Below are positions 1,399-19,287 of a stretch of 64,000 bases of DNA, piece after piece. The stretch comes from Vitrella brassicaformis CCMP3155 (Eukaryota > Protista > Chromerida): NCBI GenBank assembly GCA_001179505.1, contig CDMY01000718.1, positions 223,383 to 287,382 on the forward strand, read 5' to 3'. A program made the translations under genes and the position numbers. Under the pieces are notes generated by a model. That model did no database searches. It was not told the origin of the DNA and saw only the letters and a program-made list of their open reading frames with translations. The stretch's first letter is position 1, and each line of letters opens with the position of its first letter.

Positions 1399-4300
1399 AT
1401 GGCAAGTCAATCTCCCTCTCGTGGGGAAGAGGGCGTTCAGCAGCAGGAGCCTTCGAGAGCTGCTGGGCTGTGCGCAGTCCAGCCGACAAGTGAGCACACG
1501 AGAGGCAACTCTGCGCATGGTCCTCACTCTGTTGGATGCGTGATCTTTTCTCAGGTGCTTCCAGTCAGCTTCGCAGCAACCACGATGCTGCCCTGCCTGA
1601 GCCGCCACGGATCAGTGGGGGCACACCAGTGACTGAAGATATGATACAGACAGCTGTTGCCACGATCGCCGTCACAGGCGTGCCACTGAGCAGCAATGCA
1701 CCTGGGCACAACACGTCACAGGTATGTGGACAAGTGAGCGGGCACGCAAAGATACGTGTGGCGCTTGATACCTGTCTGCCTGCTGGTTCCACCCAGGGCT
1801 CTCTCCATCATTTTTCATCAACAGGACCGTCATCGATCGACCATGATCCGCCATTCCCCTACCCACAGCCACCAGCCGCCGCTCTTCCTCACCCCTCGCA
1901 GCCACCAATCCACCCGTATTACCTACTCCCGCACCACGCCCTCGTCCATTGCCCCGTGGATGGCGTACCTGCTGTGTCGCCGGATGCGACGGCCGGGTCG
2001 GCACGCCGGCGTGCGTCATCCCTCCCGTACTCTTCTCGATCAAGGGAATTCACGATCGACGAGAGAGAGAGGCTTGTGGACGAGTTCGAGACGCGCAGGG
2101 CAGCGGGAGAGGCCCTCACGCAGCAGGCATTTGCACTCGAGAAGGGCATCACACTCAGCCAGCTGAAGCACTGGCTGGTCAAGGTGGGACAGGAGACTGA
2201 AGCAGCCGACAAGACAAAGAAGCGCAACAGGCCACCGAGGTATGGGCCGATCGAGGCCGAGATGCGTCAATGGATGCTAACCCAGCAACAGCCTATGCAA
2301 GTCCCGTGCGAGGCAATCCGCCGCAGAGCGCTGGAGATCGCTCGTCGCCTGGGCATCAACGACTTCAAGGCGAGCAACAGCTGGATCACAGGCCTCAAGG
2401 AACGCTACCAACAGGTGGGACAGAGATCGAGCAGGCGGGGCATGAGCGTATGCGCAATCCATCGCATGTCTGTTGCGTTGCCCGATTCAGGGTATCACTT
2501 TCGTCCCCGAACTGTCTCCTGCTGCTTCTGTCGCTGCTGCTGCTGCTGCTCCTGACACCGATGACGTGATGGTGAGGGAAGACTACATGAAAGGCGCACT
2601 CACCTCGGATTTGCGTGTGGTCTAGTTGGTGGGACCGGAGGTGTTCAGAGCCGACGCATCGGATGACAGGCACAGCCAGCCGAAACGGACAAACAATCAG
2701 GTGACAGCAAGCAGTTCATGATTTCACATGACTCGTCATCTTGTGGGCGTTTCAGAGACGCGGAGAAGGGCGATCTGCTCCCCACTCCCCTCTCCCGACG
2801 CATCCACCCCATCCCCACCCTCTGCCGATATCCCTCACCCTCCACCCAGCCCCACAGCCCAACACACCTCCATCCATCGGCACTTGCCAGGAGGGTGCTG
2901 CTGCTCCACAGCCAGTTGACGACGATGATACACACACAGCGGATGGATTTATCGGCCGAGGTCGTGGCGACGAGCCAGCAGGGCCAACACAACAAGACAG
3001 CCTAATGGCGGAACTCGAGAGGGAGCTGAGAGACTACATGGCGAATTTTGGTTATCCAATGGCCGTGAACAGGGAGGTCATCAGGGACACAGCGTTGCAG
3101 ATTGCAAGTCGGCTGCTGGGGCTGAATGACTTCTGCGCGAGCGACGAGTGGATCGAGGCATTCATGGTGCCGTACCAGCAGGTAGGAGAGAGCAAACACA
3201 TGGAGGGAAGCAACGTCAATGGCGATTCCTGTTTGCCCGCATGCTCTATTTCTCTCCAGAGCCCACCTGTTGTTGCCGCTGCGGCGGCTGCAAACAGTGC
3301 CTACTGCCCGGGTCATCCAACCCCGAGCACACAGTCGCCCAGCCCCCTCACCCCACAAGCAGGTCGGCCGCTGAATGACTACACATGTACCAGCACATAT
3401 TCATTGGAACTGCTGCGCTTCAGGCAATGGCGGCGCTGCCGTACGTACCCCCGTGACGTCATCCCCTGCTCAGGTGAGCGTGTGTACGCACTTACGTGAC
3501 TGTAGCGGCCCTGTGTGATACTGTCTGTATATACATGTGTTCCCTACTGGCTCCAGAGCACTACGGGCGCTGCTGTGGAGCAACAGTCGGAACATTCACA
3601 TGGCCGGGACACCATGAGTGTAAGAAGCACTACCACACCATCTGTCTGAGTACACATCAGCCATCTACATGTGTACTGTGTTGTCTCAGGTCGTCCACTC
3701 AGAGGACAGGAGGACGGCCAGTGGCGACAGGCACCCCAAGTACCAGAAGAATGACCGATTCCCGCACTTAGAGGACCCGTGCTCGGTGGTAAGGGGTGCA
3801 TAGGGATCACTCGGCTGCAGCGCATCCGTATTGTCGTCTTCGTGTTGTGTGTTCAGGTATGGTCTCGTTCGTCGGTCAAGTCTGCGATCAGCGACAGCGC
3901 CGATGACACCTCCAGTGGCAAACAAGAGGTCAGTACGAAGGGAGGACACAGCAATAGCTTCCCTGCTGCACATGGGGTGTACACGTCCTTCTCTGTCTCT
4001 TGTGCCGTCACCAGGCCGATGCTGACATCATTAGTTTGTCATCCGATGGTGTGGTCGCTGCAAGGGTCCTGGCGGCTTGCAGCACGACAGAACAAGGCTG
4101 TAGCGACACACTGCGAGGCGACGTGATACCTAAAATGACAGCCATTGACCCCTCACTCGTTACCGTTCACCAAGCATACGACTGGTAAAACACTTGCACA
4201 CATACGTACTCGTCCACGTAAATTATCAGATGGTATGGCAGGTACACTTATGAGCAGAACAAGGGCGTCAGTGGCTGGTTCTCCTTACTGGGGCCTGTTC

Positions 4301-4926
4301 ATCAAGGAGGACAACACTACGACCTGCGCAGGCAGGTACTCAGCAAGCGAAACGACGCAGGATAGGCCGACAAAGACTCTAGTGTCCGGCGTTTCTCAGG
4401 GCTCGGGCTTGCCCCCGGCCCACGTGTCAAGTAGTGATAACCTGATGGTAGAGCTGTTAGGTGTGTCGAGCCTGTTGGTTTCACTTAAGGTTCTCGCCAG
4501 CACAGTGCCTTTGACGGAACAAGTGGTAGGCTGCGGTTCTGACGGTGCTTTGACATTGCGTCTTCTTGTCCTCTTCTCGGTGCAGGTCGCCCTGCTGATC
4601 GATCATCAGCTTCCATTCATCACTTCAACCATTCAAAAGAACCGAGAGGCAATCGACCAGAGGGAGGAGAAGATCTTCGGGCAACTGGGGGACAGCATGA
4701 GAGAGCTGCTCAGGAAGCTGGAACCGCACGTCGGCGAGCTCGACCAGGGCATCAAAAATGCCTTTCATCGACTGGCCGAGAAGATAAATGGCGGCGCTGC
4801 AGTCGCATCTTCTTCTCTTGGCGAGTCCCTGCACGGCTTCCTGCACTCGTTCATGCTGATTCCATCCGAGAAGCGGAACCTTCTCCTGGAGATTGTAGCG
4901 GCGTGGACTGTCGAGCTCTTCACAAG
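1399..4926 (+). CDS. CENP-B/Tc5-type HTH protein (two HTH modules plus an unassigned helical region); splices in frame into the downstream ZnF-PARG
   Basis: Module 1 ~2040-2414 (REFTIDERERLV...GITLSQLKHWL...RYGPIEAEMRQW...IRRRALEIARRLGINDFKASNSWITGLKERY). Module 2 ~3005-3180 (ELERELRDY...VIRDTALQIASRLLGLNDFCASDEWIEAF). Both match the FKAS.GW signature of CENP-B/pogo DNA-binding domains. Phase-compatible GT-AG introns traced from ATG 1399 through 3620-3690, 4185-4241, 4336-4399 and 4927-4982. Confidence 0.75.
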
Positions 4927-4982
4927 GTACATGGCAGAATGGAGGTGGCCTGAGAGCGCTGAGTTGGGGTGTGTCTTTGCAG

Positions 4983-6829
4983 GTGTCCTCCCAACAATCG
5001 TCACTCATCCAGCAGGGAGGGCTCAAGACAGCCGAAAGGCCGCCGTGTTGGGTGCCGGGTGCCTGGCTGCTATCATGCCAACTGCCTGAGAACCGGACAC
5101 CATTACTGCAAATGGTGCAAGGACACCGACTCTGCCCACTTCGCCGCTGATTGCCACCGCAAGCCCGGCTTCAGCGGGGAATACCCAGCAAACACGGCTT
5201 TGGTGAGTGGGCCAAACAAACGGGGACCGCTGCATGAGCCCATTTGGTGTGTCTGCTCATGCTCTTAGGCATTTTTATTGCCCTGGCCGTCGTTCCCATT
5301 CTGGTCGCACTACCCGTCACCCCAGTACAGCTCCCCTCGCAGCATCCAAGACATCCTGGCCCACCACGCCCACGATCACGGCCGCGCAAAGGAGCCCACG
5401 GACGTCACCCGTCTGCTGAGCACGCTGCAGTCGGCCATGGGCGGCCGAGGGGGCAGCTTCCGTGGAGTGGAAAAGATGTGGACCTCCATCTTCATCGACG
5501 AGACGCTGCCCGTCCTGTGTGACGTCCTCTCCAAGGGCGGCTACAGCTTCCCTCTGCGATCCTCCTCCAACAACCCGGGCAGCGGCATGGAGAAACAGAT
5601 GACGGCTCGGCAGTGCTTCGCCCTCATCGGCGCGGGCTTCCTCTGTCTGCACAAGCACGACGATCCAGGCAGCCTCAACTTTGACCGCCTGTTCGACAAC
5701 AGCACACCCTCTGGCATGGCCAAGCTGCAGTGCTTCATCAACTACCTCGACACCATGGCGCGGGCCATCAAGGAGAACAAGAGCACCGAGACGGATCGTG
5801 TGGTCATCTTCCAAGCCCTGCATAGCCCAGCGGCGGGGCTTCAGGAGTGGTCGGAGTCGACTGCCACTCTGGTGGACGTGCGATTCGTGGAAGGCACCCA
5901 AGCGTCCATCTTCGACTCGGAGGGCATTAGGGGCGACTTCGCCAACGAGGACATCGGTGGCGGAACGCTGGGAAACGGTACGCAGACCACCTCAGGGGAC
6001 CCACATGCCTTCTTGCATGTGTGTCTGTGTCTTGCTGTGTGTGTGTGTGTCTGTGTCAGGTGCGGTGCAGGAGGAGATTTTGTTCTCAATCGAGCCTGAG
6101 TGCCTTGTCGCCCGCTACCTCTTCCCCAGAGCCATGCAGCCCACAGAGGCCTTCATGATCGTCGGCTCCAAGACGTTCAGCCGCACATCGGGATACGGCC
6201 GCGAGACCCTCCGCTTCGCTGGCCCTGTCCTCGACACCGCCACCACGAGACACGTCGATGGCCATCCGGTGCTGAACAAGTACATCGTGGCCTTCGATGC
6301 CGTCAACTTTGGCAAGCACGGGGGCGATCAGCAGTACGACGAGACGTGTGTGCTGCGGGAGCTCAACAAGGCACACACGGCGTTCCACTGCAATGGCCTG
6401 ACGGTCGTCAGTGGCATGCCCTTCGCGACGGGTGAGTGAGGCACACACACAGAATGGTCATCTTGTCTTGTCTGCACATCTGCGTCGGCTCGTGTGTCTG
6501 TGCGTGTGTCTGTCTGTCCAGGCAATTGGGGCTGCGGTGTGTTTGGTGGCGACCCCCAGTGAAAGCTGCTCATCCAGTGGTGTGCTGCGAGTATCGCCGG
6601 CCGCCCGCTGCACTACTACCCGCGAGACGAGCGCAGCCTTATGGGCGCCGAGCGCTTCATCCACAGCCTGAAGGCCGCTGGGTGCGACACTGTAGGCGGG
6701 CTGGTCCAGCTGATGTGTGACAGGCGCACACAGAGGGCCATCGCGGGGCGGAATCGAATGTCGGCATTCGAGGCCATCAAGGCGATCTTCACGGAGCGGA
6801 GCAGACCATCCCCACCACCCGTGGTATAA
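4983..6829 (+). CDS. PARG: Poly(ADP-ribose) glycohydrolase catalytic domain with N-terminal zinc finger (copy 1, intact)
   Basis: Exons 4983-5202, 5269-5977, 6060-6431, 6522-6829. PARG signature DFANEDIGGGTLGNG|AVQEE (GGG-x-QEE), plus SGYG, AFDA, RELNKA and ATG|NWGCGVFGGD. Confidence 0.93.
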
Positions 6830-6914
6830 GCTGCCCCTCCATACCTGTCTGCATCAATCTCATCGGCTTTGTGCGTTTGTGTGCCAGTCTCGCAGCTCAT
6901 TGCCTCCATCCCAC

Positions 6915-8722
6915 ATGCAGCACTACTCGCCCCAGTTCGCATTGACCGACGCGCCTGCAACGCCACCCACGACACGTCAAGACGGCCAGCGCAACGTGGT
7001 GAGCCGTCAGCCAAAGCTGAGGTCCTGTGGTCATGCCTGTCTGTTTGTGCCCGCCATGTGTTGCCGTGGCTGTGTTGTCTGCAGGGTGGTTCGTCATCGT
7101 CAGGGCGGTCCCGCGGCCACCACTCGCCCGACCACCACGCTCACCACCGCGGCTCCCATGACAGAGAGCACAGCCACGAGAGAAAGCCAAGTTATGACCC
7201 CAAGCCCTTGGGCTGCCGTGTCAAGGGCTGCACTCATCCCAACTGCCGGAAGACGGGCAAGCACTACTGCAAAACCTGCGGCGACACGGTACTGTGCCGA
7301 CAAGAACCAAGGCCGATGATGCGACGCGACACCAGTATCGCCTCTCTGTGTGTTTGTCTGTGTGCAGGACTCTGATCACTATTCGTCTGCATGCCCCAAG
7401 CTGCGGAAGGCCTCGTCGAGTCGGGTGCGGTCGGCCGCTGACTCGGGTGGAAGTGATGATGACGGCAACGAATCGGACGATAGCACAGTGCAAAGGGATG
7501 GGAAGGGGAGGCCGCATTGCTTCCTACGCACTCATGGTTAGTGCTGTTGTCTGTTGTGTGTTGCTGTCAGGCTGCATCGTCCCGCAGGTCTCGTCGGTCG
7601 TCTGGCTGCTCGTCTGGCTCCCCGGGTGGCGCCAACCCGATGATGCAGCCCATGATGCAGGTTCGCTCATGCGCATGCACTCAGTGGATGCGAAGGCTGG
7701 CCGATGGTGTGTTCTTTGGCATTGTGTGGCGCAGCTCCTCATGTCAATGATGCAGCAGCCGCCTCCGCCACCCCCTGCGCCCGCCACAGGAGCTGGCCAG
7801 CAGGACACCGACCAGACGGCCAATCAGAACACCAATCAGCAGACCAACCAGAACGCCAATGCAGCCCTGGTGGGCACACGCCACTGCAAGCACCTCCGCC
7901 GCCTCTCACCGTGTATTTGTATGTCCCCTTCAGGCCGCCCCTGTGTGTGACCCGCGTGTGCTGGCTACAGCCATGCTCTTCAACAACCTCTTCATATCGG
8001 GTCAGCAGCAGCAGCAGGGCGGTGACTCGCCTCGCCACCGCCGCCGCTCCCCGTCCCCCCGTCGCCCGTCGTGCGGCGTCCGAGGCTGCCGCATCGACCA
8101 CTCCCAACACAAGTGCCGACGGTGCGGCAAGATCAACGACCATTTGACCAGGGACTGCACAGTGCAATGTCGTGTGCCCGGCTGCAAGAAAGCGCACAAT
8201 CACTACTGCCGTCTGTGTGGAGACAAGGACAGCGACCACTGGGCCAGCGAATGCCCCAAGGGCATCACACTTTACCACCAGACATCCATAGCGGCAGGTC
8301 AGGCGATCGCGTCGGGCCGCAACATGCAGCCGGGCACTGGTGGTCTCGTTGGTGGCGGCATCTATTTGTAAGCACATGGCACATCATGGCGTGAATGTGC
8401 TGTCTCTGCATGTACGTGCGCGTGTGTGTGTCTCGTCAGTGCGGCGACCGAGCAAGAGACCAACAGAAAGGCCCACCACCGCGGCTGCATGATCGAGGCC
8501 AGAGTGTACCTGGGAAAGATCAAGCAGATCACCAAGACCCAGATCTTCAACTACACCCACCAGAGCCTGCAGCAAGAGGGCTACGACTCGATACACGTGA
8601 CGCCCATGGTGACGGGGGATGAGTACATCGTCTTCAACCGGGCGCAGGTTAAGCTGAGGAAGGTGTGGGACATGGCGACCAAAGCAGAGATTCCCATCAA
8701 GCATCATGATCTGTCACAGTGA
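6915..8722 (+). CDS. Zinc-finger, Gig2/PARP-like H-Y-E ADP-ribosyltransferase (copy 1, intact)
   Basis: Exons 6915(or 6888)-6998, 7085-7288, 7368-7487, 7571-7660, 7735-7869, 7934-8367, 8440-8722. Three Cys/His fingers followed by LYHQTS...AIAS...GGGIY|FA...KAHHRG...ARVYLG...GYDS...GDEYIVF. The H-Y-E triad is intact. Confidence 0.85.
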
Positions 8723-9143
8723 GACCGGCATGTGTGATAAGACACATTGATGTGTGTAAGCTCTTTCCACGTGTTGTGTTGAGTGACTACGTGGTTAGTG
8801 ATGTATAAGAAGTGATATCTCGGTCGAGGTAGGTTTCGTGTGCTGGCTTTCCTTTTTGTCGGCTGCTGCCTTGGCCAACCGAAAGGTCGGCCCTGTAATG
8901 TGGTGTTGGTGGAGTGGGGGAGCTGACCGCATCGCTGTCATGCGCATGAATGCACTCTGTCTCTGTGCTACCGGCCTTGTGATGACTTGGTGCTACTAAC
9001 CCTCTTGGTGCTCCGACGACACACATTGCACAAGATATAATAAGTATTCACGAGCACATGAAAACACACCCAGTGAGTGCTGACCAGTCAGCTACAAGTG
9101 GGCAAATATCTACGCCTTGACCTGCTTCTACTCGCACTTGTGA

Positions 9144-12100
9144 TTATTTGCCTAGATAGTGCAGCCTATTGATTCGTTCGGGAAGCAGTTCCGCCAACTC
9201 CTTGGCCTAAAACACACACACACACACACACGCACACACGCGCACACACAGCCGTTTTGCTGTATCAGTTGCATCGGTTGGTCACTTACTCACCAGTCTG
9301 ACTTGCTCCTTGAGCGTAACGTCGCATTTCTCTACCATGTCGGGATGCTTGGACGCATAAGCCAACACACTCTCGTACTCCTATGAACACACACACACAC
9401 ACACCGCACGCAGAGACTCAGTGACACAACAGGTGTATTCGTCTCTTGTGGTTGCTGACTTTGAGCGCCTTGACGTAGCTCTCCTTCCTCTGCTCGAACG
9501 TCGTACCGCACTTCATCAACATACTAAACAACAACCACACATACACACACACACACACACACACAGATGCAACACAGCGCCTGAATGGACGCACTTATCA
9601 GCCTTCCTGACCTGGCTCTCGTCATCTTTGCCATCCAGTAGGGCTTGACATCGTCCTCCTCCAGCGACCACTCGCCCTCCCTCTCCCTCCTGTTGGCCTC
9701 ACGCACCTCACCCAGCTTCGCCGACGCCACCTTGTGGGGGTCCTTGTCGAACGTGTTGATGAAGTGCGAGTAGAATGTCACGGCCTGCTGCGCCAGCTCG
9801 GCCAGCTTGGCTTGCAACTTGCCGGACGGCTTCAGGCCTGGGAAAAGGGGAAGGCAGTTGGCAGATGAGTGTGTGCGTGGGTGTGTGTGTGGGGGAGGGG
9901 GGGAGGGGGGGCTGGCTGACCGGTGTCGTCTTCTTGTTGATCTTGGTCTTTTGCGGGTGGTGGCTCCTTGGGCCGTGATGTGTGCAGGGACACGGCGGGC
10001 ATATCGTATTTCTTGAGGTCGTGCAGCTCCTGACACAACTCGCCGCACTCGAACGCCATCTGACGACTGACAGACACGCACAGCCATCCACGCACATAAG
10101 TACACACAAGGCTGCGATCTGCCTTTGTGCGTGTGGGGGGCTTACACGTGAACGAGGAAGTGTTGTGGATTGAGTTGCTCGACCAGCGGTCCCAGTATCT
10201 TTAGTCGCCGCGACATCATCGATGCGATGCGCTGCGTGTCGGGCTCGAAGTAACTTAGATGCCTGTCAAGACACACACGTAGGTGTGTGAGAGGGTTCGT
10301 GGGCGCTGTGCATTGGACTCTCACCTGTACAGTGCTGATTGCAGAATGGCCAGCCTAACGTGATCGGTCACATACCCATCCAGCACATAATACTGACACA
10401 CACCACAGACACCAGCCACAAATGCATGCAGACCTTTCCACGATGGTCCCTGCCGTACAGACGTTCATGGCCTGCTGCGCGTAGTAGTTGCCCAGCTTGA
10501 AGATCTCCCGCGCCATCTCAAACGAGAAAGCAGCACCCCTGTGCCGCTGGAACACATCCGGCTGCTCTTTGACACAGGCCGGCAGGTCGTCCTTCTCCAT
10601 GTGCTCGGCTCGAAGGCGGAAGAACTCCTCGTTTGAGGACCGGATGCGGCGCTCGATCTCCTTGTGGATGGGAGGGAAGTGCACGGCAGGGGCCACCATC
10701 ATGTCGGCGGAGAGGGCGACACACCTGACGGCCACATGGACACACAGACGGCGTGCAAAAGGATCCCTGTATCTGTGCACGTGCGTGTTTGTGCGCACCG
10801 GTCCGGTGGCGTATGGATGCCGTTCTCTTTGTCGCTGGCCTGGCCGTTGGCCTGGTCTGCTGGTGGTGTGTCGATGATCCGCTCCTCACTTTGTGCGGTA
10901 TCCTTATCCTCCTCCCTGGACAACGCTATCACCTACACCACACACACACACACACACAAACAGACCCATTCACTTATCCATGGACACATGAATGCTGACC
11001 CACCCACCCGTCCACCCACCCACCCATCCGCCCGCCAGCCCACCTCAGGTCTCTCTTGGTTCCACACGATATCATTCTCCCCCCTGACGCGCCACATCCA
11101 GCTGTCCAGGGTCTCTGTCGTCGGCAGGGCGTACGAGGACGATGCCGAGCCGTCGGTGTCCATCGACGACGAGCGAGTGGCTGCATCGTCTGAGCTGGCG
11201 AGAGGGGGTCCCAATGGCAGAGGGGAGGGAGGGGGCTGACAGACACACAAAAAAATACACACAAGCACCAGGTATGTTCCCATCCTTAGCTCCTGTGCGT
11301 GTTACCTCACCTCTGGCGGGAACACCAGGCGGCCGTCTTCCTCGATGTCCTTCCCATCCCCCTCGCCGCTCCCCGCTGCCTTGGAGCCGCCCTTGAAGCT
11401 CTCGGCCGCCCTGTCGGGGTGCTGGCAGAGCTGCTGGGAGAACTTGAGACGGATCGAGTAGAGGGTGGCCAGATCACGATGTACCTCGGCACGCAGCTCG
11501 GCGATGGGGAACGTATCAACATCAGCCTGAAGGATCAACAAAGCGGAATGACGTCCTGCCGTCGGTTCGTAACGGGTGTGAAAGTGTGTGACCTGTGTGG
11601 CTCTCTGGGCGACGACAGCGGCTGCATGCAGCAGGTACTCGCTGGTCCACATCAGCACCTCGTTGACGAAGTAGTCGCTCAGCTGACAGGCGTTCCTCAC
11701 CCAATCCTTGACGTCGAACCGGTTGGCCTTGACCTTGTCATCCTCCTCATCCCCTCCCCTCTCTCTCCCCGGCGGCTGCATGAACTCGTCATCGGTGAAC
11801 GACGACTTGTTGGCCAGCTGCCGCTCCAGCGTCATGGCGCAGTACTCGGCAGACAGCCGCCCCTCGCCCATCCCGCCATAAGCTTGCGCGAGGTAGAAGA
11901 GGGTCAGCGTATATTCCTTCTCCAGGTCGTGTGTGAAGCCCTCTGCTGTCGGCTGGGCGGCGGATTGCTTGGCGTGGGTGTAGAGCAGGAGATTGCGCCG
12001 GAGGTAGTTGCAGCCTCGCCTGGAGCTGGCGCGGTTGCACCAGATGGAGGCCATCAAGTTGCCCATCTTGAGCAGCATCAGCCGGTGCTTCTGCATCGAC

Positions 12101-14343: not shown

Positions 14344-15956
14344 TCACTTGTGCTTGATGGGTATCTGTCTTCCCGACGCCATGTCCCGAATCTTCCTCGG
14401 CTTCACCTGCGCCCAGTTGAAGACGATGTACTCATCTCCCGTTCCCATGCCGGTCAGATGCACCGAGTCGTATCCCTGTGCTTTGAGGCTTGTGTGGGTG
14501 TACTGGCCAGACTGGGCCGCAGGAACCGTGAGGGTCCTTCCCAGAAATACTCGCGCCTCGATTATGCAGCCTCGGTGATGGGCCTTGCCTCTTGTGGCCT
14601 GTTCGGACGCCGCACTGACGAGACACATCGACACAGGCACACATGAGACAGAGACAGAAGGATGGTGACTACATGGTTTCCGTGGTTTCGCCTGCTTACA
14701 AGTAGATGCCGCCCCCGACGATGCCCGCCGCTCCCCGCATCATCTTCCCGCCCGACGCGATGGCCTGAGCTGCCTGGGGGCTCGTCTGGTGGTAGAGAGT
14801 GACGCCTTTGGGGCATTCGCTGGCCCAGTGGTCGCTGTTGTCGCTCCTGCAGAGGCGGCAGTGGTGGAAGTGGCGCTCCCTGCAGCCCCTGACTTTGCAT
14901 GGGGCCGGGCAGTCCCTGGTCAGGTGGCTGTTGATCTTGCCGCACCGTCGGCACTTGTGTGTGGAGTGGTTCTCCCGGCAACCTCGCACGCCGCACGACT
15001 AGCGACGGGGGGACTCTGAACGGGTACGGCGCCGGGACGAGGCAGTGCCCCGCTGCTGCTGTTGCTGCTGCTGGAAGATGGTGCTGAAGAGATTCATTGC
15101 TGCAATCAGCAAACCAGCCCACGCCGCAGCAGGGGCCTGAAGGAACATGCAAGTACACGGTGAGAGATTTGAAGTGTCTGTGAGTGCCCTGCCCACCGGG
15201 GCTGCATTGGTGTTCTGGTTGGTCTGCTGATAGGTGTTCTGATTGGCCGTCTGGTCGGTGTTGTCCTGCTGGCCAGCTCCTGTGGCGGGCGCAGGGGGTG
15301 GCGGAGGCGGTTGCTGCATCATTGACATGAGCAGCTGCGCCACACAATGCCAAAGAACACACCATCGGCCAGCCTTCGCATCCACCGAGTGCATGCGCAT
15401 GAGCGTACCTGCATCATGGGCTGCATCATCGGGTTGGCGCCACCCGGGGAGCCAGACGAGCAGCCAGACGACCGACGAGACCTGCGGGACGATGCAGCCT
15501 GACAGCCACACACAACAGACAGCAGCACCAACCATCAATGCATTGAATGCGGCCTCCCCCTCCCCTCGTACCGTGCTGTCGTCCGATTCGTTGCCGTCAT
15601 CATCACTTCCACCCGAGTCAGCAGCCGACCGCGCCCGACTCGACGAGGCCTTTCGCAGCTTGGGGCATGCAGACGAATAGTGATCAGAGTCCTGCACACA
15701 CACAAACACACAGAGAGGCGGTTCTGTCGCATCATCGGCCTTGGTTCATGTTGGCACAGGACCGCGTCGCCGCAGGTCTTGCAGTAGTGCTTGCCCGTCT
15801 TCTGGCAGTTGGGGTGAGTGCAGGAAGGGATCCTGCAGCCGCCGGAGCGACTCGGAGCCTGACAGACAGAGAAGGACGCATATCAAGCAGCGAAGAAGGA
15901 TGTGTCCAGGATGCGCGAGCTGTCCGTCATGAGCCAATCTTCCACACCTGCGACAT
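14344..15956 (-). pseudogene. Zinc-finger Gig2/PARP-like ADP-ribosyltransferase (copy 2) with an in-frame TAG
   Basis: ATG 15956 (MSQ|APSRSGGCRIPSC...). Paralog of 6915-8722 with the H-Y-E triad intact (LYHQTS, GIY|FA, GDEYIVF). Codon 14999-15001 is TAG where copy 1 has CCG (Pro). Confidence 0.8.
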
Positions 15957-16267
15957 TCGACGATGCCGCCGCCTGCCAGGCACCTCCAAAACGTCGGAAA
16001 AAAGGAAGAGGTCGTTTCCCTTGGTGCGAGCTAGCCTCGTAAATCCTGTTCGTCGGGCTAGCCTACGAGTCTCGACATCCAATTCCTACTTCGGGGCTAT
16101 TCCTGTCGAGGGTAGTTTGTCCTCACAAATCGTTCCCCGCTGTCGCCCTGGCGTCAAAGCTCGTTTCTGTGCTTTTTTTCCCATCTCGCCTCTTTCCCTT
16201 TGCCGGCCAAGGCAACAAGGACTGCCACAACACGCCCCCTTCCTTCGTGAGCGCAGAGAACCAAACC
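15957..16267. promoter_or_regulatory. Putative bidirectional promoter between ART copy 2 and PARG copy 2
   Basis: 311 bp between divergent predicted ATGs (15956 on minus, 16268 on plus). Contains GCTAGCCT twice (~16030, ~16057). Confidence 0.5.
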
Positions 16268-18442
16268 ATGCCAGCTCACATGGTAAGCCGGGCACGCACA
16301 CACGCACACACGCACACAGCAAGGCAGCGGTGCCTGTGATGTCTGTGCCTGTGCGCAGTCGGACAGAGGCTGCCGTGTCCGCGGTTGCACCTTCGCCAGC
16401 TGCCAGAAAACCGGCCGCCACCATTGCAGCAATTGCGATAACACAGACTCGGACCACTTCGCCACTGATTGCCCTTACGGACGCGGGAGACACAGTATAC
16501 CCTCGGTGAGCTGACACCCGCTCTCCACTTGTGCGTCTGTTGCCATTCCATCTCTCTGTGTTTCCTGTAGGGCGGGCGCCACTCGCCCAACAATCGTCAC
16601 TCATCCAGCAGGGAGGGCTCAAGACAGCCGAAAGGCCGTCGTGTTGGGTGCCGGGTGCCTGGCTGCTATCATGCCAACTGCCTGAGAACCGGACACCATT
16701 ACTGCAAATGGTGCAAGGACACCGACTCTGCCCACTTCGCCGCTGATTGCCACCGCAAGCCCGGCTTCAGCGGGGAATACCCAGCAAACACGGCTTTGGT
16801 GAGTGGGCCAAACAAACGGGGACCGCTGCATGAGCCCATTTGGTGTGTCTGCTCATGCTCTTAGGCATTTTCATTGCCCTGGCCGTCGTTCCCATTCTGG
16901 TCGCACTACCCGTCACCCCAGTACAGCTCCCCTCGCAGCATCCAAGACATCCTTGCCCACCACGCCACAGATGAGGGACGCGCAAAGGAGCCCACGGACG
17001 TCACTCGTCTGCTGAGCACGCTGCAGTCGGCCATGGGCGGCCGAGGGGGCAGCTTCCATGGCGTGGAGAGGGTGCTGACCTCCACCTTCATCGACGAGAC
17101 GCTGCCCGTCCTGTGCGGCATCCTCTCCAGGGGTGACTCCAGCTTCCCCCTGCAGCCGCCATCCAGCCACCCACACAGCACAATGGAGAAAAAGATGACG
17201 GCTCGGCAGTGCTTCGTCCTCATCGGTGCGGGCTTCCTCTGTCTGCACCAGCACGGAGACGGCAGCCTCAACTTCGATCGCCTGTTCGACAACCACACAC
17301 CCTCTGGCATGGCCAAGCTGCAGTGCTTCATCCACTACCTGGACGTCATGGCGCGGACAATCAAGCAGGGCAACACCGCCGAGACGGAGCGTTTGGTCGT
17401 GTTCCAAGCCCTCAGCAGCCCCGAGGCGGGTATCCACGAGTGGGCGACATCGACCGCCCCACTGGTGGATGTGCGCTTCGTGCAAGGCACCCAAGCGTCC
17501 ATCTTCGACGCGCCGGCCATCCGCGGGGACTTCGCCAATGCCCACATCGGCGGCGGGACACTGGGGAATGGTACGCACACAAAGACGAGAGACAGACAGG
17601 TTGATGTGCATCGATTCACATGTGTCTTTTCCGTCTCCATCTCTCTCTCTGTGTCTGTGTCTGTGTGTGTGTGTGTCTGTGTCAGGTGCGGTGCAGGAGG
17701 AGATCTTGTTCTCGATCGAGCCCGAGTGCCTCGTCGCCCGCCACCTCTTCCCCAGAGCCATGCAGCCCACAGAGGCCTTCATGATCGTCGGCTCCAAGAC
17801 GTTCAGCAAAACATCTGGCTACGGCCGCGAGACCCTCCGCTTCGCCGGCCCTGTCCTCGACACCGCCACCACGAGACACGTCGATGGCCATCCGGTTCTG
17901 AACAAGTACATCGTGGCCTTCGATGCCGTCAACTTCGGCGAGCACAGGGGCGATCAGCAGTACGACGAGAGGTGCGTGCTGCGGGAGCTCAACAAGGCAC
18001 ACGCGGCATTGCCACTGCAATGGCCAATTGGCCGGCTTGGCCTTCGCGACGGGTGAGTGAGGCACACACAGAATGGCCATCTTGTCTTGTCTGCACATCT
18101 GCGTCGGTTCGTGTGTCTGCGTGTCTCTGTCCAGGCAATTGGGGCTGTGGTGTGTTTGGTGGCGACCCCCAGTGGAAGCTGCTCATCCAGTGGTGTGCTG
18201 CGAGTATCGCCGGCCGCCCGCTGCACTACTACCCGCGAGACGAGCGCAGCATTATGGGCGCCGAGCGCTTCATCCACAGCCTGAAGGCCGCTGGGTGCGA
18301 CACTGTAGGCGGGCTGGTCCAGCTGATGTGTGACAGGCGCACACAGAGGGCCATCGCGGGGCGGAATCGAATGTCGGCATTCGAGGCCATCAAGGCGATC
18401 GTCACGGAGCGGAGCAGACCATCCCCACCACCCGTGGTATAA
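16268..18442 (+). pseudogene. PARG: Double-zinc-finger PARG (copy 2) with a +1 frameshift near 18011
   Basis: Exons 16268-16282, 16359-16505 (GCRVRGCTFASCQKTGRHHCSNCDNTDSDHFATDCP), 16571-16798, 16865-17570, 17686-18052, 18135-18442. GGG..QEE intact. An extra G at 18011 puts the NWGCG exon out of frame. Confidence 0.8.
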
Positions 18443-18527
18443 GCTGCCCCTCCATACCTGTCTGCATCAATCTCATCGGCTTTGTGCGTTTGTGTGCCAG
18501 TCTCGCAGCTCGTTGCCTCCATCCCAC

Positions 18528-19287
18528 ATGCAGCACTACTCGCCCCAGTTCGCATTGACCGACGCGCCTGCAACGTCACCCACGACACGTCAAGTCGGCC
18601 AGCGCAACGTGGTGAGCCGTCAGACAGAAGTGAGGTCCTGTAGTCATGCCTGTCTGTCTGTCCCCAGGCAGCCCTCGCTGCGTCTCCCATGTTGTCGGCC
18701 GTCACTGCAGAGGGTCATCACACGACTCGGGAGAATCCGAGAGAGGTCCGCCGAGACACAACGCACATGCGTCGGTGTTCGTGACTGATGGTCCATGTCG
18801 ATTGATGTGCTGTTATTGTTTTGCCGCGGCAGGCTGAGCACGCTCCTCTGGTCGACACGGCCGGCAACAAACCGACCACGAGCACCAAGAAGATCGACAA
18901 CAAGGCGGACATCGACACGGCGAAAACGAGCGGCAAAAAGTGAGCATTCGTGTCTCACTGCAGTGAGGAATCAGTGGACAGAGTCTGCATGTGTCTCTGT
19001 GTCCATGTCGTGTTGTCAGGGTCGACCACGTATTCGAGTACGTGCCGATGAAGCATCGTCGGCCCGCTAAGGTGGAGCTCAAGGGCTCTTTCGACGGCTG
19101 GCAGCGTCGTTACCAGATGCACTGGTCGCCCGAGAACAGCTGCTACGTGCTGCCTCTCTCGCTGCCCCCGGGCAAGCACATGTATAAGTTCATCGTGGAC
19201 GACAGGTGGACATGTGCATACACGCAACCGAAGGACAAAGATGGAGCTGGCAATACCAACAATGTACTCACCCTCCGACTTGACTGA
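18528..19287 (+). CDS. AMPK-beta-type glycogen-binding (CBM48) domain protein
   Basis: Last exon VDHVFEY...KVELKGSFDGWQRRYQM...YVLPLSLPPGKHMYKFIVDDRW...KDGAGNTNNVL is a typical AMPK1_CBM. Three upstream phase-compatible low-complexity exons. Confidence 0.8.

Follow-up and report, generated by a model that had tools for sequence, protein, structure and literature searches.

A stretch of 64,000 nucleotides from the genome of Vitrella brassicaformis CCMP3155 (contig CDMY01000718.1, positions 223,383 to 287,382 of the forward strand; the whole stretch is called the window here, coordinates are positions in it, and features lie on the forward strand (+) unless stated otherwise) contains, at 3005-8722, what is best interpreted as a single chimeric transcription unit. 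In this interpretation, to which we assign a probability of about 0.7, the unit was assembled by shuffling, is interrupted by an in-frame TGA at 6560-6562, and contains an ordinary intron at 6824-6887. Its mRNA would encode, in order, a Tc5-type helix-turn-helix (HTH) domain, a helical region, a zinc finger, a PARG, which removes ADP-ribose (an eraser), a linker, three zinc fingers, and a PARP-like ADP-ribosyltransferase (ART; a writer). Intron 6824-6887 would have been inherited from the PARG family, in which the linker exon leads to a C-terminal AMPK1_CBM domain; recombination within intron 12, at about 7052-7057, would have replaced the exons for this carbohydrate-binding module (CBM) by zinc-finger and ART exons, an exchange helped by the phase-0 introns, and a change of TGG to TGA at 6560-6562 would have broken the frame within the PARG macro fold in the sequenced strain. 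Ordinary translation would then end at this codon and yield a C-terminally truncated PARG, with the ART part left untranslated barring read-through, re-initiation, or an internal start.

The intron at 6824-6887 (intron 11; 64 nucleotides, phase 0, GTATAAGC...TGTGCCAG) is real and spliced and is an ordinary spliceosomal intron, a call that is solid because it is made by spliced contigs, by conservation among paralogs, and by the presence of the junction peptide in the public model P0151. A previous sequence-only reading of this region had noted that the PARG exons run into the letters ...CCC GTG/GTATAA, with a GT at 6824-6825 and a TAA at 6827-6829, that an acceptor ending ...TGTGCCAG has its AG at 6886-6887, and that splicing from 6823 to 6888 continues the PARG frame into the frame of an ATG downstream at 6915. 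This observation is confirmed, and the interpretation given to it is partly supported. It should be recognized that the interval holds just two GT and two AG candidates and that two of the four possible pairings are in frame; the in-frame pairing, judged from the letters alone, is weak evidence for an intron. The acceptor is TG-rich and typical, as had been claimed, with a T+G fraction of 0.82 ahead of the AG, and the length of 64 nucleotides is close to the median of 70 for the 17 introns of the gene, whose donors are highly variable past the GT itself.

Positions 3500-9400 of the window were compared with the assembled contigs of four sequencing runs from four studies (X1, X3, X4, and X5). 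X3 and X4 are DNA-like, with contigs that run collinearly with the genome and show no joints, whereas X1 and X5, from two studies, are RNA-like and give 15 joints, every one with GT..AG ends. The joint from 6822 to 6887 (+1) is the exact skip of 6824-6887 and has a depth of 5 in X1 and of 32 in X5, so that the splice across 6823/6888 proposed for verification in RNA is found at the contig level in both runs. In X5, contig 28 (737 nucleotides, 0 differences, in blocks 6525-6822, 6888-6998, 7085-7288, and 7368-7489) connects exon 11 of PARG through linker exon 12 to two zinc-finger exons further downstream and carries letters specific to the PARG copy of this locus, PARG1, as opposed to its sister copy in the window, PARG2, at 6562, 6788, and 6899; in X1, contig 2 (208 nucleotides) crosses both junctions of exon 12. 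No contig that retains the intron was found in X1 or X5, and the spliced contigs explain the full bin depths around it; splicing appears to be constitutive. Contigs speak to the presence and dominance of the spliced form, rare retention and single-molecule continuity being beyond their resolution. The boundaries, the removal from RNA (at contig level), and the position in homologs are all those of a GT-AG spliceosomal intron.

PARG is represented in the genome by at least 10 loci and this type of ART by at least 15, and in an alignment of seven PARG paralogs the same phase-0 intron position is occupied by introns of 61-77 nucleotides with the acceptor AG at 6886-6887 invariant. Three copies have the donor GTAAGC, two others have GTCAGC or GTACAC, and PARG1 and PARG2 have GTATAAGC, where two additional letters create the TAA at 6827-6829. 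A homologous in-frame linker exon of 108-141 nucleotides, with the next donor GTGAGCC, is present in four of the six other copies (PARG2 and loci L009, L014, and L013), the aligned stretch being short or ending early in the remaining two, and the paralog model P0154 splices the same intron and includes the linker exon. Comparison of the copies indicates that the intron is ancestral to the PARG family. It is therefore not cryptic, as had been proposed, but family-wide and already spliced in public models, and the TAA that had been taken as the end of PARG1 is an intronic triplet that arose from the 2-nucleotide insertion common to PARG1 and PARG2. Likewise, the Met codon at 6915-6917, which had been taken as the start of a separate gene, ART1, is kept in the linker exons of PARG2 and of the L009 paralog, two copies that lack a downstream ART; because of this conservation in linker exons without an ART, it is an internal residue and not a start.

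These results bear on two accounts that had been derived from the locus. The reading of the region as two tandem genes, PARG1 ending at TAA 6827-6829 and ART1 beginning at ATG 6915, 85 nucleotides apart, has the raw sequence as its sole basis; it is contradicted by the spliced contigs, by the intron and linker exon conserved in paralogs, and by the public models, and is the least probable of the accounts considered. The suggestion that splicing and retention of 6824-6887 act as a regulated switch, with retention giving PARG alone to TAA 6827 and splicing giving the fusion, draws on the fact that a TAA directly after the donor in PARG1 and PARG2 would end the frame cleanly. However, no contig covers the intron in either RNA run, although rare forms lie beyond what contigs record, the same TAA-bearing intron occurs in PARG2, which has no downstream ART, and, with the TGA upstream, the choice has no consequence for the protein, so that such a switch is very improbable.

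The gene model of the preferred interpretation, a single interrupted transcription unit, was built from the RNA joints together with two introns, at 5978-6059 and 6432-6521, that were deduced from homology and splice sites, and was translated exon by exon with tracking of phase. Its 18 exons between 3554 and 8722 share one frame, in which the sole internal stop is the TGA at 6560-6562. The introns from 3620-3689 through 5203-5268 are backed by RNA joints. The upstream half (3005-6562), with HTH_Tnp_Tc5, a helical region, a Cys/His zinc finger, and PARG, corresponds to the public model P0159 (878 residues), which begins at ATG 3005, contains all the exon peptides in order, and ends with ...GGDPQ, immediately ahead of the TGA. 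Exon 11 (6522-6823), the last of the catalytic exons of PARG, holds the nonsense codon and is covered by X5 contig 28 over 6525-6822 with 0 differences. Within it, the first in-frame ATG after the TGA, at 6641-6643, is the start of the public model P0151 (519 residues), which matches the remaining exons exactly, includes the predicted junction peptide over 6823/6888 that is obtained from the joined frame, and runs to the stop of the ART. Linker exon 12 (6888-6998; 37 codons, phase 0-0) has RNA joints on both sides and is followed by intron 12 (6999-7084), which contains the putative recombination breakpoint and is removed by the joint from 6997 to 7084 in X1 and X5. Exons 13 to 17 (first part), at 7085-8263, encode a His-rich stretch and three Cys/His zinc fingers separated by low-complexity linkers, and are established by RNA joints, phases, and the exact match to P0151; their introns are at 7289-7367, 7488-7570, 7661-7734, and 7870-7933. 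The PARP-like ART domain (8264-8722) is interrupted by an intron at 8368-8439 and ends at TGA 8720-8722.

Public annotation thus cuts the locus at TGA 6560-6562 into two abutting models, and it is because of this codon that there are two. The intron 6824-6887 is already used in that annotation, in P0151; what is new relative to it is that P0159 and P0151 are the halves of one frame split by a nonsense codon. The TGA was overlooked in the sequence-only reading, although it lies in the same exon as the donor proposed there and 88 codons ahead of the 6823/6888 junction. The central proposal of that reading, that eraser and writer are joined, probably holds for the mRNA, in which the exons lie in one frame, but fails for a single polypeptide, which is blocked by the TGA.

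This codon is a genuine feature of the sequenced strain and is particular to PARG1. It is located in ...GGDPQ-stop-KLLIQW, where five paralogs have TGG (Trp) and the public paralog model P0154 also has Trp. The RNA contig of X5 has the A at 6562, as do DNA contigs of X3 and X4. In X3 and X4 an A-contig and a G-contig are each found at about single-copy depth; a second allele was considered as the source of the G and rejected, as the G fits PARG2, whose sequence has the same 45-mer with G. An alternative genetic code or a selenocysteine codon was ruled out, since the ART frame is itself terminated by a TGA (8720-8722), from which it also follows that TGA acts as a stop in this genome, and since the ancestral residue is Trp rather than Cys. 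Use of an alternative acceptor AG at 6558-6559 that would bypass the TGA was likewise rejected, because a frame shift would result and because 6525-6822 is uninterrupted in the RNA contig.

In the PARG_cat_C profile, which has 207 positions, the stop corresponds to about position 179 and removes the last conserved helix and strand (KLLIQW...LHYY, which align with solved PARG structures) together with about 60 more residues, so that a complete PARG macro fold is not present in one open frame, nor are the PARG core and the ART, between which the TGA lies and the annotation is split. As judged from these positions, the truncated PARG ending at the TGA is probably inactive, and an eraser and a writer on one polypeptide, as encoded, are unlikely.

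A full-length eraser-writer of about 1,424 residues could nevertheless be made if the TGA were read through, or if it were a variant specific to the culture, with TGG in wild Vitrella. Near-cognate decoding of UGA can insert Trp, which is the ancestral residue at 6560-6562; the 545 codons after the TGA are intact and retain the H-Y-E triad of the ART and every zinc finger, the GGG-X7-QEE signature of PARG is undamaged upstream, and the transcript is abundant enough to be assembled in two runs. Set against these points, the base following the stop is A, and TGA A is not known to be a leaky stop context; TGA terminates the ART frame itself; the A at 6562 is found in the DNA contigs of two studies as well as in the RNA contig; and decay is common in the family. 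The last point is made because PARG2, ART2, and the ART at L013 are also broken. Thus, PARG2 has a 1-nucleotide insertion at 18011 relative to PARG1 and a 6-nucleotide deletion nearby, and its truncated model P0158 ends in frameshifted residues; ART2, which is head-to-head with PARG2, has an in-frame stop at about 14999-15001 on the reverse strand (-), in the zinc-finger region, and only a 104-residue fragment of it is modelled (P0002); and the ART gene at L013 is broken by a TAA. Production of the full-length protein in this way is consequently considered unlikely. In its strongest form, this account would have a functional canonical PARG and a PARP-type ART acting in cis behind a transposase-derived DNA-binding domain, by way of UGA read-through or of isolates with TGG, as a PARG-based counterpart of PARP14 that arose by very recent recombination within an intron in a rapidly evolving family of writers and erasers; this, too, is doubtful.

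A different possibility is that the locus gives two products: the long mRNA would yield a truncated PARG, and a zinc finger-ART protein, similar to P0151 or beginning at Met 6915, would come from shorter transcripts with an internal start in or near exon 11 or 12, or would arise by re-initiation. The contig depths point in this direction, being about 12-18 upstream, 32 at the junction, and 44-90 downstream in X5 and 0-5 upstream and 6-17 downstream in X1, and there are in-frame ATGs at 6641 and 6915 after the TGA. However, contig depth does not measure expression, the neighbouring gene is fused into the last contig, and the gradient is explained by 3' bias; in addition, a splice acceptor stands at the start of exon 12, which occupies an internal position in every paralog, and re-initiation is unlikely after an open frame of at least 878 codons. 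Two separate products are therefore improbable, though considerably less so than a retention switch.

Several points weigh against the interpretation of the locus as one chimeric unit disabled by the TGA. The evidence consists of assembled contigs, which do not prove continuity in single molecules, do not define transcript starts and ends, and lose rare isoforms. Exon 11 is connected to exons 12-14 by contig 28, and the remaining exons, apart from exon 10 in X5, lie in overlapping contigs, but contigs cannot prove that one molecule spans the HTH to the ART. In X5 there is no contig on exon 10 (6060-6431), and the exon 9 contig continues into exon 10 of another paralog: in X5 contig 27, at 5979, the 25 letters past PARG1 exon 9 match exon 10 of the L010/L005 paralog (C718:53.6 kb), from which it can be seen that this paralog is expressed and that Logan contigs can switch between paralogs at shared words. 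The 545 codons that follow the TGA are also free of further disabling changes, a finding that fits continued use of the downstream frame as well; so isolated a defect suggests either that the mutation is very recent or that this part is still used to some extent. Finally, an mRNA with a premature stop, for which degradation might be expected, is still assembled in two runs.

The identities of the two enzymatic parts are derived from profile, structural, and motif comparisons. PARG_cat_N (PF20811) is recognized in exon 9 with a Pfam score of 35.1 bits (cut-off 25.6; E 1.8e-8) and PARG_cat_C (PF05028) in exon 10 with 96.9 bits (cut-off 26.3; E 1.6e-27), a PARG paralog aligns with solved PARGs at 1e-27, and the signature, defined here as GGG-X6-8-QEE, is intact as GGGTLGNG/AVQEE over the exon 9/10 junction and is also contained in P0159. 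HTH_Tnp_Tc5, the HTH type of Tc5 transposases, is found in the upstream exons (Pfam 9.2e-6). For the ART, the Pfam PARP profile (PF00644) gives 29.2 bits for residues 370-519 of P0151 against a cut-off of 26.7, and 24.1 bits for the whole protein, and is hence borderline, and searches of the PDB with the ART halves encoded by single exons gave no significant match (E 0.5-0.7). Against the PDB, a profile built from 12 family members gave PARP3 at 1.1e-10, followed by PARP4, ZAP, tankyrases, and PARP1/2, and an AlphaFold2 model of the domain (pLDDT 91.3) has the ART domains of PARP1-4 as its top Foldseek matches, with probability 1.00 and TMq 0.52-0.59. The triad is encoded at 8276-8278 (His), 8363-8365 (Tyr), and 8621-8623 (Glu), in the motifs YHQT, GGIYF, and DEYIVF; among 60 relatives, Tyr and Glu never vary and His is present in at least 90%, and all three are invariant in the alignment of 12 sequences. 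The segment 8264-8722 is therefore predicted to be a PARP-like H-Y-E ADP-ribosyltransferase domain.

Among 1.84 billion representatives, the ART family has 849 relatives at E<=0.001, mostly short proteins, and no PARG was found in any of 20 long ART-family relatives scanned with Pfam. The best relative from outside Vitrella, P0001 (1042 residues), has four tandem minimal PARP-like domains followed by a long low-complexity tail, and other relatives are fused to helicase, WWE, or MOV10 domains.

The architecture of the paralogs indicates how the fusion may have arisen. In the PARG paralogs the frame goes on from the linker to an AMPK1_CBM exon (Pfam 6e-20), an arrangement represented by seven PARG loci and by models P0154 to P0157. 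The PARG-CBM paralogs, for example P0154 (808 residues; zinc finger-PARG-linker-CBM) and also P0155, P0156, and P0157, share with the present locus the zinc-finger and PARG exons, the position of intron 6824-6887, and the linker exon, with an identity of 76% in the junction region. They differ in having the Trp codon and the downstream AMPK1_CBM, whereas PARG1 has the TGA, zinc-finger and ART exons downstream, and HTH exons upstream. The AMPK1_CBM domains, which are of the glycogen-binding CBM48 type, are located at 18991-19287 (+) in the window, at 5952-6232 in L009, 6374-6652 (-) in L010, 4863-5142 and 5708-5987 in L014, and 996-1223 in L017; the combination of a PARG with a carbohydrate-binding module is itself an unusual architecture.

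In blastn comparisons, 4990-7052 matches PARG2 (16586-18665) and 7057-7292 matches positions 2811-3046 of L013. The homology to PARG2 ends inside intron 12 at about 7052, and the letters from 7057 onward correspond to an intron 3' end and a zinc-finger exon of the C238 paralog (L013) and, further on, the zinc finger-ART genes. At four other loci the ART lies head-to-head upstream of PARG, and only at this locus does it lie downstream on the same strand. The stand-alone zinc finger-ART protein P0004 (392 residues) agrees with the present locus in its zinc fingers, its H-Y-E domain, and its intron within GIY/F/A and is 79% identical to P0151, but it has its own Met just ahead of the first zinc finger, whereas exon 13 of the present locus has a different 5' part that lacks an ATG and is spliced to the PARG linker exon. 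The stand-alone zinc finger-ART paralogs are not spliced to PARG, and splicing of an ART to a PARG occurs only here. Because of the homology break in intron 12, the architecture of the paralogs, the head-to-head loci, and the different start of P0004, the sequence comparisons indicate that the fusion is a case of exon shuffling by recombination within an intron.

The head-to-head pairs of zinc finger-ART and PARG-CBM genes are about 1-3 kb apart and are found at C718:171-176 kb, C718:52-57 kb, C238:96-102 kb, and 14351-18665 of the window. The writer/eraser pair seems to be a duplicating unit, to which the fused tandem arrangement at 4983-8722 seems to be the exception. PARG1 is also a mosaic: in exon 9 (5461-5950) the residues that differ from PARG2 and L009 mostly agree with C238 (L013), and exons 11 and 12 are 97-99% identical to PARG2, a pattern that points to frequent gene conversion among the PARG paralogs. 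A branch-wise analysis of nonsynonymous and synonymous substitution (dN/dS) for relaxed selection was dropped, as this mosaicism makes the polarising of changes unreliable.

As a class, the locus resembles other chimeric exon-shuffled genes and expressed unitary pseudogenes in its intron breakpoint, phase-compatible introns, chimeric transcript, and single nonsense codon, and the only feature that is unusual in comparison is that the partners are antagonistic enzymes of one pathway. The closest functional parallel is human PARP14, a macrodomain-PARP that has transferase and hydrolase activities on one chain (PMC10499325, PMC10470015). The two are alike in that one reading frame specifies both an ART of the PARP type and a macro-fold domain that removes ADP-ribose, but the eraser of PARP14 is a MacroD-type macrodomain in an intact, proven enzyme, whereas that of the Vitrella locus is a canonical PARG, predicted from sequence, in an interrupted frame. 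No canonical PARG fused to a PARP-type ART was found in limited searches of proteins and of the literature, which is no proof of absence. The Vitrella fusion of PARG and ART exists as a gene and probably as an mRNA, and its frame is not the uninterrupted one that a bifunctional protein calls for.

The present analysis settles a question of annotation, in that the stop noted previously is intronic, the start noted previously is internal, and the two public models are halves of what is probably one chimeric transcript. It also provides a clean and datable case of exon shuffling between antagonistic enzymes, with an intron breakpoint and phase-0 exons, in an expanded ADP-ribosylation family. Were the fusion to prove functional in certain isolates, it would stand beside PARP14 as a second writer and eraser enzyme of independent evolutionary origin; in the reference strain, the locus is more likely a recently disabled gene, for which the biological impact would be modest.

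Two features of the flanking regions may be added. An ATG-started open reading frame of 339 codons at 1536-2552 (+), which lies upstream of the P0159 start at ATG 3005, also encodes an HTH_Tnp_Tc5 domain (3.5e-8). At the other end, X5 contig 30 (3065 nucleotides) extends from the 3' region of the ART past 9203 into the neighbouring gene (window 8507-9490), and a loose end at 9380 in X1 and X5 matches 9461-9490, an intron of a gene on the opposite strand; the 3' ends of the two convergent genes seem to abut or overlap.

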